Sequence record: MF360958.1 | Length of the DNA stretch: 64,000 nucleotides | Direction: 5' to 3' (one strand) | Shown: positions 1 through 33,416 of the stretch, in pieces | Layout: each line of letters starts with the position of its first letter | How positions within the stretch are numbered: position 1 is the first letter of the stretch | The notes under the pieces: generated by a model | Databases searched by the model: none | Told to the model about the DNA's origin: nothing | The model's input: only the letters and a program-made list of their open reading frames with translations | Position numbers and translations under genes: made by a program

Positions 1-1020
1 GTTATAATTAGATGGATCAATATGAACAACTTCACTAGGGGCCATATTTTTTTTCCCAATTTTATTATCCCAATACTCGCTTCGTGATTCTTCCAATTCA
101 TACTGTTTCGTTGAACTTGGCATATGACCATTTTTCATAAGTAACTCATCTCGAAATTGTTGATTATCTTTTTCTGAATTGAAAACAACAGTAAACGCAT
201 TATTAATAACCGTAGTATAGTAAGAAAAAGGATTAGAAGAAAATAGTTCATTAAATTGAAGCCCTACACTTGATAATTGCACCAATGCATGTGTAATCAT
301 TTCATCAATGTAGGAATAATCTCTCCAATTATGCTTTTTAGAAATACGTTCTGTTAACTTCATAAAAGCTAATCCTAAACCATCATTTATTTTCCCATGT
401 TTTACATCAAATTCTTTATTACTATTATAATGAGATAATGCTACACATTGCACTTGTCCATCAACTATTGCATAATGTTTGTAGGGTGGAAAATTAACTT
501 TTTCTTTATAATCTGATACCAACATATGCTTTTTATTTTTACGAGGTTCACTTGTATAAGGAATATGCTCATAGGTAAAAACTCTTAAAACTAAATCATT
601 CTCATCAATTTCAACATTTTTTGGAAGTTCATTAACACGTTTATTACCATTTTCATATAACTTTCTATTATAATGACCTAGTTTAAGATGATTTAATAAT
701 TTTTCATCAAATTTTCCATTAAATATAACAATTTTATTATCTATATATTCAAAATCCTCAGAAGTTAATAAGTCCATATCTGATTCCTTCAGAACAGAAG
801 TTCTTCGTTTATTCTTTTTTATTCGTTTATTGTTTACTATTTGTAACATTAATTGTTCACGACATTGGTAATATAAATCATCCGCACATGCTATAAAATC
901 ATAATCCAAAAATTTTGTATTACGCCATGTTCCATCAATATACCATGTAAATGATGCCTTTGATAAATGAATATTTCTTAATATTTCTTTATTCTTTAAA
1001 TAGTGTTCTTGTTTTGCCAT
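1..1020 (-). CDS. gp55: T4 gp55-like late-transcription sigma factor (3' end runs off the window; missing from the ORF track)
   Basis: Translated by hand from ATG at 1020: MAKQEHYLKNKEILRNIHLSK...LGLAFMKLTERISKKHNWRDYSYIDEMITHALVQL...SSNPFSYYTTVINNAF...SEKDNQQFRDELL; matches the gp55 pattern (YxxNKE; Y.Y.DEM; NPF.Y.T...NAF). Frame appears open to position 1. Confidence 0.85.
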   Translation of the reverse strand, partial: MAKQEHYLKNKEILRNIHLSKASFTWYIDGTWRNTKFLDYDFIACADDLYYQCREQLMLQIVNNKRIKKNKRRTSVLKESDMDLLTSEDFEYIDNKIVIFNGKFDEKLLNHLKLGHYNRKLYENGNKRVNELPKNVEIDENDLVLRVFTYEHIPYTSEPRKNKKHMLVSDYKEKVNFPPYKHYAIVDGQVQCVALSHYNSNKEFDVKHGKINDGLGLAFMKLTERISKKHNWRDYSYIDEMITHALVQLSSVGLQFNELFSSNPFSYYTTVINNAFTVVFNSEKDNQQFRDELLMKNGHMPSSTKQYELEESRSEYWDNKIGKKNMAPSEVVHIDPSNYN

Positions 1021-16669: not shown

Positions 16670-16684
16670 TTGGAGGATTTTATT

Positions 16685-18655
16685 ATGAGAAAACCAGTCG
16701 ATATGACAAAGTTTGCATCGTCTGTGACAAAGAAAATGAATGTAAGTCACGGCTTTAATGATCCGCATGTATGGATCAGTACCGGAAATTTCATTCTCAA
16801 TTATCTTATTTCAGGCGATTTTAATAAAGGTGTACCTTTAAGCAAAGTAACAATGTTTGCCGGAGATAGTGGGTGTTTACCAGAAGATGCTATTGTAAAT
16901 GTCCGGTTTTGCAAGAAAAATTTATTTGTAAAGAACCATGCAAAACAAATGACTGTAAAAGAACTTAAAGAACTATATAATTCAGGAGAATATGATATAG
17001 AACTGGAAACACCCGATGGTTGGCAATCTGTTACTGAGTGGTTTGATAAAGGCTTACTTGATATGGTAACTATTCAAACTGAAAATTTTTCCACTAGATG
17101 CGCTGTAAATCATCTTATTCAAAATTCTAATGATGAATGGATAAAAGCTGAAAACCTTAACGTTGGTGATAAGATACAAACGGTTATAGGTGTTGAAGAA
17201 GTTTGTAGTGTAGAATTAATGAATGAAAAAGAAAATTGTTATGACTTCACAATAGACCATCCAAATCATCGTTATTTTGGCGACGGTATTGTTTCCCACA
17301 ATAGCGGTAAATCGTTCATCGCTTCCGGTAAAATTGTTAAGAACTGTCAGGATCGCGGCATTATGCCCGTTATTTTTGATTCTGAAAACGCTTTGGATGA
17401 ACAATGGCTTAAAGACCTTGGGGTAGATACCGATCCTGAAAAACTTCTTCGTTTCCAAGTGTCTATGATTAATGATGTTGGGAAGATCATGTCTGAATTC
17501 ATTGAAATGTATCGTAAAGAATACATGGACCTTCCTAAAGAAGAACAGCCATGTTTCATGTTTATTGTGGATTCTCTTGGTATGCTTCTTACTGAAACAG
17601 ATGTTGATCAATTCGACAAAGGCGACATGAAAGGTGATATGGGTCGCAAACCTAAACAACTTAACGCACTTGTACGTAATGTAGTTAACCAAGTTGCTGA
17701 TAAAAATATTGGTGTTGTATTCACAAACCATACATATGCATCTCAGGATATATTTGACCCGGACGATAAGATAAGTGGTGGTTGTCTTGTAGCAGATACC
17801 GATATTCTCACGGATAATGGTATAAAATCTATTCAAGATTTTGAAGTAGGAGATAAAGTTCTTTCTAGTGATGGTCAATATCATGATGTAATTCAAACTT
17901 GGCATTATCAGAAAGAAACTTATGAAATAGAACTCGAAGATGGAACTGTATTTGAATGTTCTCCTGAACATAAGTTTCTTGTAAAAGATGATAATAATGA
18001 ACAAGTTTGGAAAGAGATTCAGATAATGTCAGAAAATGATGTTGTTTATACCTATTCTGAAAATAAATTAGTTTTAAAAGTAAAATCTATAACAAAAACT
18101 AATAATATTAAAGATGTCTATGATATTCAAGTTGAAGATACTGGCGAGTATATACTTGCAGATAATAACGTTGTAAGTCATAACTCAGGACAAATTTTCG
18201 CCTCATCTATTGTAGTAGCTTCTAAAAAACTTAAACTTAAAACCGACGATGAAGGTAATAAGACAAGTGAGGTAAATGGTATACGTTCAATGGTTAAAAT
18301 CATGAAGTCTCGTTACGGACGTGCTTATGAAACTGCGAAGTTGAATATTCGTTTCGATAGTGGTCTTGAACCTTATTCTGGTTGTCTTGATTATTTTGAA
18401 AAATTAGGTGTTATTCAACAAGTAGGTAATAAACTACAATATATTGATAAAGATGGTAATGAACATAAACAATTCCGTAAAAAGTTTGAAGCTGATCATG
18501 ATCTTCTTCAAAAAATTATTGATGAATGGGATTATGATAAGTATCGTCTTATTTCTTCAGAACAAGTAGAAAATTCATCTGGTCTAGTTACTGATCAAGA
18601 AAAGGAAGAACTTAAACAAGATAGTGAAGAAAAACCAGAAGATGATAATAGTTAA
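16685..18655 (+). CDS. uvsX: UvsX/RecA recombinase precursor with two inteins (about 379 aa after splicing)
   Basis: WISTGN..LNYLISG, Walker A GDSG|SGKS, FDSENALD, VDSLG, GDMGRK, FTNHTY, SS.VV; start revised to ATG 16685 after GGAGG. Confidence 0.93.
   Translation: MRKPVDMTKFASSVTKKMNVSHGFNDPHVWISTGNFILNYLISGDFNKGVPLSKVTMFAGDSGCLPEDAIVNVRFCKKNLFVKNHAKQMTVKELKELYNSGEYDIELETPDGWQSVTEWFDKGLLDMVTIQTENFSTRCAVNHLIQNSNDEWIKAENLNVGDKIQTVIGVEEVCSVELMNEKENCYDFTIDHPNHRYFGDGIVSHNSGKSFIASGKIVKNCQDRGIMPVIFDSENALDEQWLKDLGVDTDPEKLLRFQVSMINDVGKIMSEFIEMYRKEYMDLPKEEQPCFMFIVDSLGMLLTETDVDQFDKGDMKGDMGRKPKQLNALVRNVVNQVADKNIGVVFTNHTYASQDIFDPDDKISGGCLVADTDILTDNGIKSIQDFEVGDKVLSSDGQYHDVIQTWHYQKETYEIELEDGTVFECSPEHKFLVKDDNNEQVWKEIQIMSENDVVYTYSENKLVLKVKSITKTNNIKDVYDIQVEDTGEYILADNNVVSHNSGQIFASSIVVASKKLKLKTDDEGNKTSEVNGIRSMVKIMKSRYGRAYETAKLNIRFDSGLEPYSGCLDYFEKLGVIQQVGNKLQYIDKDGNEHKQFRKKFEADHDLLQKIIDEWDYDKYRLISSEQVENSSGLVTDQEKEELKQDSEEKPEDDNS
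16874..17302 (+). mobile_element. Mini-intein 1 in UvsX (143 aa), inside the Walker A loop
   Basis: Starts CLPEDA, block B RCAVNH, ends GIVSHN followed by Ser; no endonuclease domain. Confidence 0.92.
17783..18184 (+). mobile_element. Mini-intein 2 in UvsX (134 aa), at the SGG|SGQ (loop L2) site
   Basis: Starts CLVADT, block B CSPEHKF, ends NVVSHN followed by Ser. Confidence 0.92.
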
Positions 18656-29992: not shown

Positions 29993-32077
29993 TTAATAAA
30001 CTGGTAGTGGCGGAACATAATCATCATCTTCGTCATCATCCCCATTACCTGTAATCCCCAACTGATCCATAAATTCATCATCTTCTTTCATCGTTTCCAT
30101 AGCCATTCGTATACAAATTACCATAGCCATAACCAAATCATCATGTTCACCCGTAGATGCCGCATACGTATTCCCACGACGAACAAAATGTTGCATTTGC
30201 TCAAGCAAAGGACGACTGCTAACTTCTAGTTTTTCGTTCTCAACCCAACTCTTTAAACGCATACAAGCAGTATGTTTACTTTCCTTGTTGGTATTATAAC
30301 CTTTACGGAAACGATTTCTTTGCCCCTTGCGCATTGGATTGTAGGGTTCACTCATAAAGTATCCAAAGAAATTGTCTTCACCGTACTCATCAATCAATAC
30401 CAATGGCGCTTCACCAACTGTATTGTTTTCAAGCGTCCAACGAACATTGTCTTCCTCAAATCCAGCTTCTTCAAACATATCCAATATACGTCTAAGTATC
30501 TTCAACTGTTCAGGCACATCACTTTTATTGTGCATCCATTCACCAACCTGAACCATTGTGGGGAATTCAAAAATTTGTATTGCAGAATAATCACCACCTG
30601 TACCCAAACTTGGATCATAACCAATCAGGTAAATATAATCCTTACTTAGTTCTTTGTACCAACGTATTTCGCCCTTACTTTTAGCAATTGGACTTTTCGT
30701 TTCAAGATTAGCCAGCTTTACCGCATTAATGAGTGTTTCTTCTTCTGATATGAATTCTAATTCATGCTCACGTAAGAAATATTCTTCACCGAACTGTCTA
30801 ATCTGATCGTATTTGTATTCTTCATCACGTTCAGGATGTTCATCCCATTTTACCTTCAATGCTTTAAAACCATTCACTCCAACTTCCATATCATTGCCAT
30901 AATCATCAATGGTCTTGTTCGCCAACTTCCACATGTTTGCAAATAGTGTATCATCGGTAGTAGGTGTGGTGGTGATAATACATTTACCACCTGTATTACT
31001 ACCTAAAATACCATTTTGTAAGAATGTATGGGTATGAGGAACCGTGAAATCATATGTAAAGTCTTGATAAGATTTTTCAATACGAGTTATTGTTAACCAT
31101 TGTGTTTCATACTTTTGATTACACTTAAATATTTGAATAGCTTGTTTATTCACACGATATTCATAGTTGAAATTGTTCAACATTTGAACAAATATACTTA
31201 ATGCATGTTCGTTCCATTTTGGAATAATATAACCGCGTGTTTCGATAAATCGATCCAAAGTACGTCTGGTTATGTTCATATAATACTCTGGATTGTTTTC
31301 AAAGTTACGATCTATATCATGAGGACTGACTTCAAGATCCCCTTCAATATTCATACCACGATCAATACGTAAGAACATTCCTGTGTTTAACTGTTCAGCA
31401 GGAATCATTCGTGCATTATCATTAATGTTTCTTCGACTGTATAAAGGATGATCAGGCGTAACTTCAACAATTTGACCATTTTCTAATCGTATTCGATATG
31501 TTTCAGAGGCAGGTGAAACATAACCATGAGAAACATCTTCGATACCACGTTTACCCCAAACCTTGAGATTATCAATCTCGAAATATTCACCAATAGAACG
31601 ATTTTCAAAATAATTGTCTATCTTTTCAAAACCATTGTCGGTCAGAATAATCGTGCCCGGAGCCAAGCATGAAATAGTAGGATAAATGGATGCCCAAAAC
31701 TTTGTCGCAATATTCTTACGGACGAAAGCAAATTCGTCACACTGAGATACATTCCCGCCATTGGCGTATATAGTATTTGAATCGGATTCGTATATATCAT
31801 ACGTATCTTCTAAGAAATCGTATTTTATAGAAGATATCTTTTCATAACCATTGATTGTTTCTATATATTGACCAACGGAAAGATTATAAGCAGGAATTTT
31901 TTCATTATTAATAATGAATTCGTGATCGGTAGTACAATGTATTTCACGATTGGTTTCAGTAGTAATGCGATAGGTATGTTTGTTACTGGATGGATTTTTA
32001 ATAACACCTTTAAAATTCTCCCAACCGTGTTGAGTCTCGATTTCGTATTTGTCATTTTCAATAAAAAACTGATTCAT
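29993..32077 (-). CDS. gp17: Large terminase, C-terminal half (Walker B to nuclease), preceded by a split-intein C-fragment and containing a second intein
   Basis: CDEFAFV Walker B, IITTTP, FLREHELEF, YLIGYDPSLGTGGDYSA, ENN..G, HDDLVMA; no Walker A half in the window; own CATAAATA promoter and GAGGG RBS. Confidence 0.9.
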   Translation of the reverse strand: MNQFFIENDKYEIETQHGWENFKGVIKNPSSNKHTYRITTETNREIHCTTDHEFIINNEKIPAYNLSVGQYIETINGYEKISSIKYDFLEDTYDIYESDSNTIYANGGNVSQCDEFAFVRKNIATKFWASIYPTISCLAPGTIILTDNGFEKIDNYFENRSIGEYFEIDNLKVWGKRGIEDVSHGYVSPASETYRIRLENGQIVEVTPDHPLYSRRNINDNARMIPAEQLNTGMFLRIDRGMNIEGDLEVSPHDIDRNFENNPEYYMNITRRTLDRFIETRGYIIPKWNEHALSIFVQMLNNFNYEYRVNKQAIQIFKCNQKYETQWLTITRIEKSYQDFTYDFTVPHTHTFLQNGILGSNTGGKCIITTTPTTDDTLFANMWKLANKTIDDYGNDMEVGVNGFKALKVKWDEHPERDEEYKYDQIRQFGEEYFLREHELEFISEEETLINAVKLANLETKSPIAKSKGEIRWYKELSKDYIYLIGYDPSLGTGGDYSAIQIFEFPTMVQVGEWMHNKSDVPEQLKILRRILDMFEEAGFEEDNVRWTLENNTVGEAPLVLIDEYGEDNFFGYFMSEPYNPMRKGQRNRFRKGYNTNKESKHTACMRLKSWVENEKLEVSSRPLLEQMQHFVRRGNTYAASTGEHDDLVMAMVICIRMAMETMKEDDEFMDQLGITGNGDDDEDDDYVPPLPVY
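30995..31669 (-). mobile_element. Contiguous intein in TerL (225 aa) with a shrunken endonuclease remnant
   Basis: Starts CLAPGT after YPTIS, block B VTPDHPL, ends YDFTVPHTHTFLQNGILGSN followed by Thr. Confidence 0.9.
31742..32077 (-). mobile_element. Intein C-fragment (112 aa) of an atypically split intein, ending in Gln
   Basis: No block A; has EIETQHGWENFKG, block B CTTDHEF, block F/G YDIYE...YANGGNVSQ followed by Cys. Confidence 0.8.
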
Positions 32078-32130
32078 AATTCCCTCATATATTTTCTTAT
32101 ATGAATATTTATGAATTATGAATCAGTTTT
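32065..32130 (-). promoter_or_regulatory. Perfect 18-bp inverted repeat covering the terL start codon, with a late promoter (32106-32113) between the arms
   Basis: AAAACTGATTCATAATTC (32065-32082) and GAATTATGAATCAGTTTT (32113-32130). Confidence 0.85.
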
Positions 32131-32160
32131 AATTATAAACTATAAGGTTTATTCTATATT

Positions 32161-33186
32161 TTAATCATTTACATATTTTTTACCTTTCTCTCTAAATTTA
32201 TAAAAAGGTTTCATTTTCTCAAGTAACCCGGCTCTTTCAAGAACTTTCATACTGGAATGACCAATATTGTTTTTATGGTCCTCATTAATAATATCGAAAA
32301 TGATATTAAATTCAGTCGAAGATTCTTGCTCTGTATAACCGGTCATAGTTAGCAATTCATTTTTAGTAATACTGCTTGAGTTGTTCTTTTTATTATTTTC
32401 TGATTTTGTTAGTAGTTGAAGATTGTTAACATCTCCTACACATATTGGGGATATGCTCTCATTCCATCCATTAACAATACTGAACATATGGTCAATTTGA
32501 TAACCATCGTCTTCATCTGTCATCTTGGAAAGTTTTTCACCTTTTGCTACGTAATCTTTTACATATTTAAGTAAGAATTCTATGATACGTTCATAACGTT
32601 GAAACGGTAGGGTCCACGATTGATGCCCATACTTTTCAGCTTTAGTCTGATTGCCTTTGACGATACTTTCCGAAGCAATTTGTTGATAACCGTTACGACC
32701 ATATTCATCTTTTTTGGAAAGATGGGTATTGCGTGTTTTCTCTCCCAACATATCATAGCGACGTTTACCGGTTTCGGGATCGACTTCATTCAACGTTTCC
32801 ATCTTTTTCTTATGAGAGACATCGTACTTGGACATATGGTTACCATTCTCATCTAAGACAGGATTGCCTTGATCGTCATACGCCATTTCTTTTAAACCAC
32901 CTGAAATCTTTTTACTGAGACATTCAGCTACTTTCCCTTTCATTTCGGGACACAGTTCATAGTATTCTTCCTGAGTGATTCCAAGTGTCTTTTCAATATG
33001 TGGTTTACGGATCTTAGTGAATCGTACTTGAGCGATAGGACAGATGATATAGTCGATATCTTCTTGAGAGTCAGGATGATAAAGACCATCCGCTTCGCGT
33101 TTACGCTGGCGTCTATCCAGTTCTTTTAATTTTTGAGATTGTGCTTGACGGATTTGGGTGATTCGTTGTATAGTATTCTCGTTCAT
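32161..33186 (-). CDS. Free-standing HNH-type homing endonuclease
   Basis: N-terminal DYIICPI...H..G.T.EEY..P zinc-finger-like part; C-terminal YQIDHMFSIVNG...NNLQLLTKSENNKK. Confidence 0.7.
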   Translation of the reverse strand: MNENTIQRITQIRQAQSQKLKELDRRQRKREADGLYHPDSQEDIDYIICPIAQVRFTKIRKPHIEKTLGITQEEYYELCPEMKGKVAECLSKKISGGLKEMAYDDQGNPVLDENGNHMSKYDVSHKKKMETLNEVDPETGKRRYDMLGEKTRNTHLSKKDEYGRNGYQQIASESIVKGNQTKAEKYGHQSWTLPFQRYERIIEFLLKYVKDYVAKGEKLSKMTDEDDGYQIDHMFSIVNGWNESISPICVGDVNNLQLLTKSENNKKNNSSSITKNELLTMTGYTEQESSTEFNIIFDIINEDHKNNIGHSSMKVLERAGLLEKMKPFYKFREKGKKYVND

Positions 33187-33340
33187 AAGGAATTTTCTCC
33201 TTCTTTTTCTTTGTGGACGTTGGTGAGACTTTCTTTATCGGGAAAGAAGCTCACCGCAATAATTGGTTGTCGCAAGTGATCCAAGCGACATATCCATTGT
33301 AGCAAAATCCCCTGTATAGTCAATGACTTGCAGGGGGTTT
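33187..33340 (-). promoter_or_regulatory. Promoter TTGACT-N16-TACAAT, structured leader of about 100 nt and SD-sequestering hairpin for the HNH gene
   Basis: -35 at 33318-33323, -10 at 33296-33301; stems 33268-33290 and 33222-33255; AAGGAG-AAAA-TTCCTT directly before ATG. Confidence 0.65.
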
Positions 33341-33416
33341 TTGTATGTATAAACATTGTATTGAAAAATAGGTATACGTTGTGGTATGATGAAAAAAACA
33401 TACTAAGGGTTATGAT

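Follow-up and report, generated by a model that had tools for sequence, protein, structure and literature searches.

Background

In bacteriophage T4, the genes e (lysozyme), soc, 49 and I-TevI each combine an inhibitory hairpin in the translation initiation region (TIR) with a nested late promoter, so that they are silent early and active late (McPheeters et al. 1986; Gott et al. 1988; reviewed in PMC3014915; see also PMC2988022). Comparable locks have been described for I-TevII, I-TevIII, segB and Aeh1 mobE (PMC3014915, PMC2988022; Gibb & Edgell 2007, 2009). Here we analyse a hairpin at the start of gp224, a gene for a fragment of the large terminase subunit (TerL), in Salicola phage SCTP-2. 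The window, a stretch of 64,000 nt, corresponds to bases 186001-250000 of MF360958.1, and coordinates refer to it unless a record or contig position is given. An original prediction, made from this sequence, had proposed that an 18-bp stem silences the terminase start codon on transcripts entering from an upstream HNH gene and is opened by a nested late promoter; it had invoked the same four T4 genes as precedents, and the literature bears this out.

Fractured genes, in which a split intein is accompanied by a free-standing endonuclease, provide a second point of comparison. Hairpins with TATAAATA were reported at the 5' untranslated region (UTR) of such loci, and the terminase locus described in the same study has an atypically long C-terminal intein fragment (IntC) of 122 amino acids (aa) (Dassa et al. 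2009, PMC2677866). In the AceL-TerL and GOS-TerL inteins, TerL is again the host protein, and a short N-terminal intein fragment (IntN) is paired with an IntC of ~104 aa that carries block B and is followed by Cys at +1 (Thiel et al. 2014; Bachmann & Mootz 2015; PMC11766414).

SCTP-2 is a myovirus-type jumbo phage of 440,001 bp that originated from a solar saltern, and its TerL is closest to those of the PA5oct, Atu_ph07 and Rak2-like jumbo phages. In the literature we found no detailed description of its genome, the mentions consisting of lists and one PolB mini-intein. The gp224 locus resembles T4 e, soc, 49 and I-TevI in that the Shine-Dalgarno sequence (SD) and/or the AUG would be hidden on long early or middle transcripts, that a late promoter of the TATAAATA type lies in or beside the 5' strand of the hairpin, that late RNA without this strand is predicted to be translated, and that the phage encodes a sigma factor of the gp55 type. 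It differs in the phage, which is halophilic, 440 kb in size, only distantly T4-like and known here from its sequence; in the motif, NATAAATA, where C, G or A serves as well as T; and in the regulated gene, a TerL fragment that begins with the C-part of a split intein. The principle is already known from T4. What is new is the target, an IntC-terminase gene downstream of an endonuclease gene, and the phage clade, together with an architecture that is conserved while its sequence is not and the three-lock repertoire of SCTP-2. The early-silent, late-active hairpin logic of T4 would be extended to a distant jumbo phage and its uncultured relatives, and SCTP-2 gains a testable late-promoter consensus and three candidate locks.

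Results and discussion

A perfect hairpin covers the start of gp224

gp224 (29993..32077, minus strand) begins with an ATG at 32077-32075, preceded by the SD GAGGGA at 32081..32086. On the minus strand, the 5' arm of the hairpin at 32130-32113, AAAACTGATTCATAATTC, is the exact reverse complement of the 3' arm at 32082-32065, GAATTATGAATCAGTTTT, and all 18 positions match, as had been claimed; an inverted-repeat search likewise returned arms of 18 nt with 100% complementarity, separated by 30 nt. The 3' arm comprises the last two SD bases, the spacer, the ATG and codons 2-4 (Met-Asn-Gln-Phe), and the GAG of the SD is paired by an inner 8-bp stem with a 6-nt loop (32105-32098 / 32091-32084). A U6 run at 32063..32068 overlaps and follows the 3' arm and is mirrored by A4 at 32127-32130, giving a terminator-like layout.

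RNA from 32160-32040 folds at -27 kcal/mol with a z-score of -5.4, and none of 200 shuffled sequences was equally stable; the z-scores obtained for this hairpin span -5.4 to -6.4. In a census of all 440,001 bp of the genome, allowing loops of up to 80 nt, it was the longest perfect inverted repeat. Since five Markov-simulated genomes contained only 0-2 repeats of at least 13 bp each, with a longest of 14 bp, the 18-bp repeat is not attributable to chance. The 5' arm is predicted to be absent from RNA begun at the nested promoter, from which the 5' half of the inner stem would also be mostly missing. For the long RNA, the probability that the TIR (-14..+5) is paired is 0.92, compared with 0.30-0.34 for the predicted late RNA; the minimum free energy at the gp224 start changes from -30 to -2.3 kcal/mol. 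Rfam yielded only sub-threshold matches to generic microRNA hairpins, and no exact DNA match to the 5' arm plus promoter was found in IMG/VR.

The nested motif is a probable T4-type late promoter

The element CATAAATA (32106..32113, minus strand) resembles the T4 late promoter and stands where it had been placed, at the end of the upstream arm, with its C forming the final base of that arm. This 8-mer is enriched 11-fold genome-wide, and half of its genomic copies (27/54) lie within 80 nt upstream of a start. The core ATAAATA occurs 361 times on both strands, with 119 copies within 100 nt upstream of same-strand starts and a peak at 20-50 nt; when C or G stands in front of it, about half of the genomic copies are upstream of starts. 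The motif stands upstream of the portal and sheath genes, of gp92 in the head operon, of gp89, the giant gp140 and gp17, and of all three TerL pieces, in whose case it lies 24-37 nt from the ATG. It was not found before the genes for DNA polymerase, gp41, gp44, ligase or ribonucleotide reductase (RNR), and other SCTP-2 genes are marked by a separate, TTGACA-type motif.

At the edge of the window, gp185 (1..1020, minus strand, cut by the window start) encodes a homolog of the T4 late sigma factor gp55 (tblastn E 3e-6, phmmer E 2e-7), which on sequence similarity is the factor expected to read NATAAATA. Because of its enrichment, its position, its association with structural genes and the presence of a gp55 homolog, NATAAATA is very likely the T4-type late promoter of SCTP-2, its promoter activity being a prediction. 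By the T4 rule, the late +1 at gp224 is predicted near 32100, giving a 5' UTR of ~23 nt. No DsbA homolog was detected in SCTP-2.

Two further genes of SCTP-2 carry the same arrangement

For 526 genes we scored the best duplex between positions -110..-19 and -18..+18 (mean -10.7, sd 3.6 kcal/mol). A nested ATAAATA occurs in three of the five most stable upstream-to-TIR duplexes, namely those of gp224 (-25.8 kcal/mol), gp125 (-25.1 kcal/mol) and gp493 (-25.0 kcal/mol). The gp125 hairpin (record 117726-117771; L005:17726-17771) is a 20-bp stem with the motif inside its 5' arm, and gp125 itself, a protein of 606 aa with unassigned function, lies 46 nt downstream of an early-type gene for an NT5C-type nucleotidase. 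In the gp493 hairpin (record 404677-404760; L010:4677-4760), an 18-bp stem covers the SD GAGGG, and TCATAAATA lies in the loop of 41 nt. In all three cases, starting the RNA 6 nt past the motif leaves a fold of just -1 to -5 kcal/mol. The stems of gp125 and gp493, read from their sequences, contain G-U pairs, which indicates a function at the RNA level. The other two TerL pieces, whose upstream genes are divergent, have no locks of note (z = -1.8 and -0.25).

gp493 encodes a free-standing HNH endonuclease (phrog_10822, E 1e-37), and its lock is the direct counterpart of those of Aeh1 mobE, segB, I-TevII and I-TevIII. gp224 shares with these systems the context of a homing endonuclease, a putative one here, that splits an essential gene, and a hairpin and late promoter that would limit translation to late times. 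The difference is that there the endonuclease is locked, whereas at gp224 it is the downstream fragment of the host gene.

Related loci keep the architecture and change the sequence

The arrangement of an IntC followed by CDE(F/L)AF was found in 111 IMG/VR contigs, 80 of which were fetched for comparison; 54 distinct contexts of this IntC-TerL-c family form the base of our upstream-gene counts. A closer comparison covered a clade of 12 loci, consisting of SCTP-2, L095, L097, L108 and eight loci with a divergent, broken or absent endonuclease gene. The closest TerL-c relatives, L095 and L097, whose TerL-c is 62% and 54% identical to that of SCTP-2, carry a full-length, same-strand homolog (52-53% identical) of gp225, the gene upstream of gp224, then a spacer of 90 and 59 nt, respectively, and then IntC-TerL-c. 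The L095 spacer forms a perfect 19-bp stem with AATAAATA in a 16-nt loop and the SD GAGGG in the 3' arm, directly followed by six U (z = -5.6), and that of L097 a stem of ~16-20 bp (z = -4.7) whose 3' arm includes the SD TAGGAGT, with CTATAAATA at the edge of arm and loop. The arms of the L095, L097 and SCTP-2 locks are mutually unrelated in sequence. In L108, a gp225 homolog is followed by a 42-nt spacer with an 11-bp version of the lock and a U-run after the stem.

In the remainder of the clade the stems are shorter. Stems of 6-10 bp are present in L011, L098, L100, L101, L104 and L107; their 3' arm holds the SD, and ATAAATA or CTAAATA falls within the 5' arm or the loop. The L105 locus, behind a separate canonical terminator, forms a 7-bp outer stem with additional inner pairs, and no lock stem was found in L106. 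The element ends 23-30 nt before the ATG in 11 of the 12 loci, and across the clade the probability of TIR pairing, 0.60-0.95 for the long RNA, drops to 0.34-0.51 for the predicted late transcript. Most family members keep Met-Asn-Gln as the IntC start; therefore it is the 5' arm that had to adapt to the coding arm. As to the endonuclease gene, the gp225 homolog adjoins IntC-TerL-c in inverted, divergent orientation at L106:667-1518 and L107:231-1085, is split into two frames in L105 and is detectable only as a 38-aa remnant in L104.

With the fractured genes of Dassa et al. these loci share a split intein, a free-standing, here putative endonuclease and a long IntC (122 aa there, 111 aa in gp224). 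The hairpins reported there precede the endonuclease open reading frame (ORF), and it is this ORF that usually overlaps the IntC start, whereas SCTP-2, L095, L097 and L108 have the lock downstream of the endonuclease gene, between it and IntC. The SCTP-2 endonuclease also differs in being HNH-like rather than Vsr-like or GIY-YIG, and the N-extein gene has moved elsewhere in the genome.

The upstream gene gp225 is a resident of the locus

By motif and predicted fold, gp225 (32161..33186, minus strand) encodes a free-standing HNH-like endonuclease. A DH...N...N motif (D232-H233, N255, N264) is invariant in the family; the only Pfam match, GmrSD_C (His-Me finger), is below cut-off at E 0.004; and the top Foldseek PDB matches of the AlphaFold2 model (predicted local distance difference test 88.6) are all HNH domains, at weak scores (E 0.08-2). 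A profile comparison of gp225 with PDB gave no match. We therefore describe the protein as HNH-like, which the model suggests and does not prove.

gp225 homologs lie directly upstream of IntC-TerL-c in ~38 of the 54 contexts (E down to 1e-63), where the family norm is an overlap of 20-34 nt between their 3' end and the IntC ATG; in 5 of the 54, the directly upstream gene is instead TerL-b+IntN. Because of this recurrence, gp225 is on sequence comparison the resident endonuclease of a widespread fractured TerL family and not a recent arrival, and the history first suggested for the locus, in which the endonuclease gene was inserted upstream and the lock evolved afterwards, does not hold in that form. 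In relatives no gp225 homolog has been shown between both intein halves, the gene upstream of the homolog not having been looked at. A comparison of L011 with SCTP-2 as a test for clean gp225 insertion was uninformative, as no flanks are shared.

A putative sigma70-like promoter for gp225 at 33296..33323 (minus strand), a consensus match only, consists of TTGACT, 16 nt and TACAAT with an upstream TG, ~100 nt before the ATG. ATAAATA does not occur upstream of gp225, and a consensus scan found no canonical terminator between gp225 and gp224.

A probable temporal lock and its alternatives

Several parts of the model are inferred: when the gp225 promoter is active, that its transcripts read through, where the late 5' end lies, how translation is affected and why early TerL-c would do harm. 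gp225 would be transcribed from its own sigma70-like promoter and, because no canonical terminator precedes gp224, its transcripts would extend into the gp224 start. In this long RNA the 18-bp stem and the inner 8-bp stem would bury SD and AUG, so that the ribosome could not load. Late in infection, the gp55-like sigma factor would initiate at CATAAATA, next to the 5' arm; the resulting RNA would begin ~6 nt downstream of the motif, without the 5' arm, and SD and AUG would be open. IntC-TerL-c would then be made only late, alongside the two other late-promoter-driven TerL fragments with which it must trans-splice. The silenced piece bears the terminase nuclease, and it is plausible that this would be useless, or possibly harmful, before its partners and proheads exist.

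We regard a T4-type temporal translational lock at gp224 as probable. The core of the original prediction, a stem hiding SD and AUG with a late promoter nested in it, is upheld as a prediction by the motif statistics, the two further SCTP-2 locks, the conserved architecture with its sequence turnover and the T4 precedents; the accompanying gene picture and history are not. More speculatively, and with rather less confidence than in the lock itself, we raise the possibility that it belongs to a control system by which a terminase is built out of three fragments that are encoded apart, joined by trans-splicing and all fired from NATAAATA. Only the nuclease-bearing piece sits behind an early-type gene, and it would be doubly insulated, by a terminator and a ribosome block with the promoter in the loop, through an insulator that co-evolves with the resident endonuclease, long if this is co-oriented and short if it is not.

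Several observations weigh against the lock or leave it less complete than in T4. No gp33 homolog was detected in SCTP-2, and matches to the promoter consensus used for gp225 are at least as frequent in shuffled sequence as here. Public runs matching the lock region were DNA runs only, with no RNA run among them. The loci L011, L098, L100, L101 and L107 carry short locks though their upstream gene is divergent, so that read-through from a co-oriented gene is insufficient as an explanation; read-through from the endonuclease gene can no longer be given as the sole reason for the lock, weaker versions of which exist without a co-oriented upstream gene. The tendency for stronger locks to stand beside an intact co-oriented endonuclease gene is a trend only (one-sided Mann-Whitney p = 0.07, n = 4 vs 8). 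Finally, the gp224 stem contains neither a G-U pair nor a mismatch, so that a role at the DNA level or a recent DNA-level origin is possible, and its A4-stem-U6 layout also suits an intrinsic terminator.

Transcriptional insulation, in which the hairpin is a factor-independent terminator for gp225 RNA that late RNA, begun at the promoter in its loop, escapes for want of the 5' arm, is the main rival; it seems to us unlikely to be the primary explanation, yet it is compatible with translational locking, and the hairpin may also terminate gp225 transcription with the same regulatory outcome. The A4 and U6 runs flank the stem as they would in a terminator, a U-run follows the 3' arm in L095 and L108 as well, the weak-lock locus L105 has its separate canonical terminator just upstream, and there is no other terminator between gp225 and gp224. 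The gp224 stem has 22% G+C and a structured 30-nt loop, however, whereas typical SCTP-2 terminators have short, G+C-rich stems with loops of 4-5 nt, and despite the U6 run the consensus scan made no call here. L097 lacks a U-run, the gp493 and gp125 locks lack such a layout, and the stop would fall inside gp224 codons 4-7.

Readings of the repeat as a DNA operator, an RNase processing site or a relic are less likely than either lock or terminator. That the arms are an operator for a dimeric regulator, as in autoregulation by the endonuclease, or a cruciform modulating the promoter, we consider very unlikely: the 18/18 match without G-U pairs would suit it, as would the documented autorepression of I-TevI through an operator overlapping its own late promoter (PMC2988022), but L095 and L097 have arms of unrelated sequence despite endonucleases with 52-53% identity, the 3' arm falls on the SD or AUG every time, and the G-U pairs of the sister locks in SCTP-2 are mismatches in DNA. 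Somewhat more improbable still is a role in RNA processing or stability, either as an RNase III-type cut separating the gp225 and gp224 messages or as a protective 3' stem for gp225 mRNA. A helix of 18-26 bp suffices as a substrate for RNase III and the stem lies exactly at the gene boundary, but nothing specific speaks for it; the 6-11-bp locks of relatives are too short, and cleavage within the stem would destroy the gp224 start and so amount to another silencing of the read-through RNA. We give least credence of all to a non-functional by-product, a chance repeat or the relic of a recent inverted duplication at the junction of endonuclease and IntC. The perfect match could mean recent origin, and the junction departs, through remodelling, from the family norm of an endonuclease ORF overlapping the IntC start; against this stand the 14-bp limit reached by the simulated genomes and the same architecture in different sequences in L095, L097 and L108 and twice more in SCTP-2.

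gp224 belongs to a three-piece terminase

The deposited record annotates three genes as "terminase large subunit", gp534, gp267 and gp224. gp534 (record 429356-429748; L010:29356-29748) encodes TerL up to Walker A (...RQLGK), followed by a 43-aa Cys-initiated IntN. gp267 (record 256428-257321; L007:6428-7321) encodes a 115-aa IntC (...SHN/T), the mid-ATPase part to ...SISLLY and a 95-aa Cys-initiated IntN-like tail. gp224, TerL piece c, starts with the Hint-type IntC of an atypical split intein (residues 1-111; 31745-32077, minus strand) that ends ...VSQ/CDEFAF at Walker B, and continues through a contiguous intein (residues 137-361; 30995-31669, minus strand; TIS/C...N/TGGK) to the RNaseH-like nuclease domain. 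The three products tile residues 13-93, 94-180 and 181-505 of PA5oct TerL exactly, with split inteins at Walker A (RQLGK/T) and Walker B (SISLLY/CDEFAF), and the genes are up to 214 kb apart. TerL therefore needs two rounds of trans-splicing and one of cis-splicing, each located at an ATPase motif.

gp224 had been called a "terminase half"; it is indeed a terminase fragment, but TerL is in three pieces and gp224 begins with the 111-aa C-fragment of a split intein. No TerL N-half lies upstream of the HNH gene: tblastn with PA5oct TerL found none in the window, and the pieces, located in the whole genome, are tens to hundreds of kb apart. As in a fractured gene, the coding sequence of the host protein is divided at a conserved site, one piece ending with an intein half and the next starting with its complement. 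The endonuclease gene, which in a fractured gene lies between the intein halves, does not do so in SCTP-2, where the IntN-bearing gp267 is 38 kb from gp225 and on the opposite strand. The SCTP-2 TerL is a dispersed derivative of a fractured gene. We found no published description of this three-piece TerL, which is more unusual than the hairpin lock. Assembled from three dispersed fragments, the terminase offers a natural system in which fragment timing may matter for packaging and for control of a free nuclease domain.

The long IntC and short IntN have the "atypical" geometry of the GOS-TerL and AceL-TerL inteins, a likeness of the proteins and not of the RNA lock that extends to the TerL host and Cys at +1. 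In contrast to those systems, SCTP-2 TerL has two split inteins plus a contiguous one, and the IntC of gp224 ends with Gln, not Asn. This last residue of the split intein (gp224 residue 111; 31745-31747) is Gln in SCTP-2, L097 and L100 in place of the usual Asn, which is present in L095, L011, L098 and L101; Cys-Asp-Glu comes next in all. The IntN-like tail of gp267 (L007:7034-7318) has 95 aa, compared with ~35 aa for the IntN tails of relatives, and contains a block-B-like motif, PEHQ, although its 111-aa partner IntC has block B. Duplication of that IntC as the source of the tail was rejected, as the two show no similarity. Intein-like segments also occur in a gene for a UvsX-like recombinase (phrog_97) at 16670-18655, where they resemble the IntC of gp267 (~17000-17302) and the contiguous intein of gp224 (~17783-18007), and RNR alpha (record ~341541-341798) gives an intein-like match.

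Further observations at the endonuclease gene and its junction with IntC

A CCCCCTG/CAGGGG hairpin with A- and T-run flanks (33296-33345), situated in a divergent intergenic region, holds the -35 box TTGACT of the putative gp225 promoter in its loop. The last ~23 residues of gp225 (32161-32230) run past the usual end of the family, and gp225 there reads tATAAATTT where relatives have the overlapping IntC start tATGAATCA. Judged from the sequence, tATAAATTT may be a decayed old IntC start left by remodelling of the junction.

In a public run, the X1 strain (~95% identical, depth ~128) has 31739-32622 replaced by 918 unalignable nt. The replaced segment covers the IntC of gp224, the lock, the spacer and the 3' half of gp225, which suggests cassette exchange of an endonuclease/intein module. 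The strain was not found in the protein database. A low-depth contig keeps the SCTP-2 form with 5 differences.

Among relatives, 21 of 36 contexts have NATAAATA no more than 110 nt ahead of the ATG of the gp225-like endonuclease gene. In ~18 of those 21 it belongs to a conserved element, TGTGAC(G/A)AGTTTGCATTTGTATAAATA, whose end lies 4-6 nt ahead of the endonuclease ATG (for example L023:3095-3126, L057:3095-3126 and L047:3095-3126) and which is lacking in SCTP-2. In one of its frames the element spells CDEFAFV-stop and so copies the first seven codons of the C-extein; it may be the remnant of a homing site, a regulatory element or both. It brings TATAAATA so near the ATG that a late RNA of the endonuclease would be leaderless.

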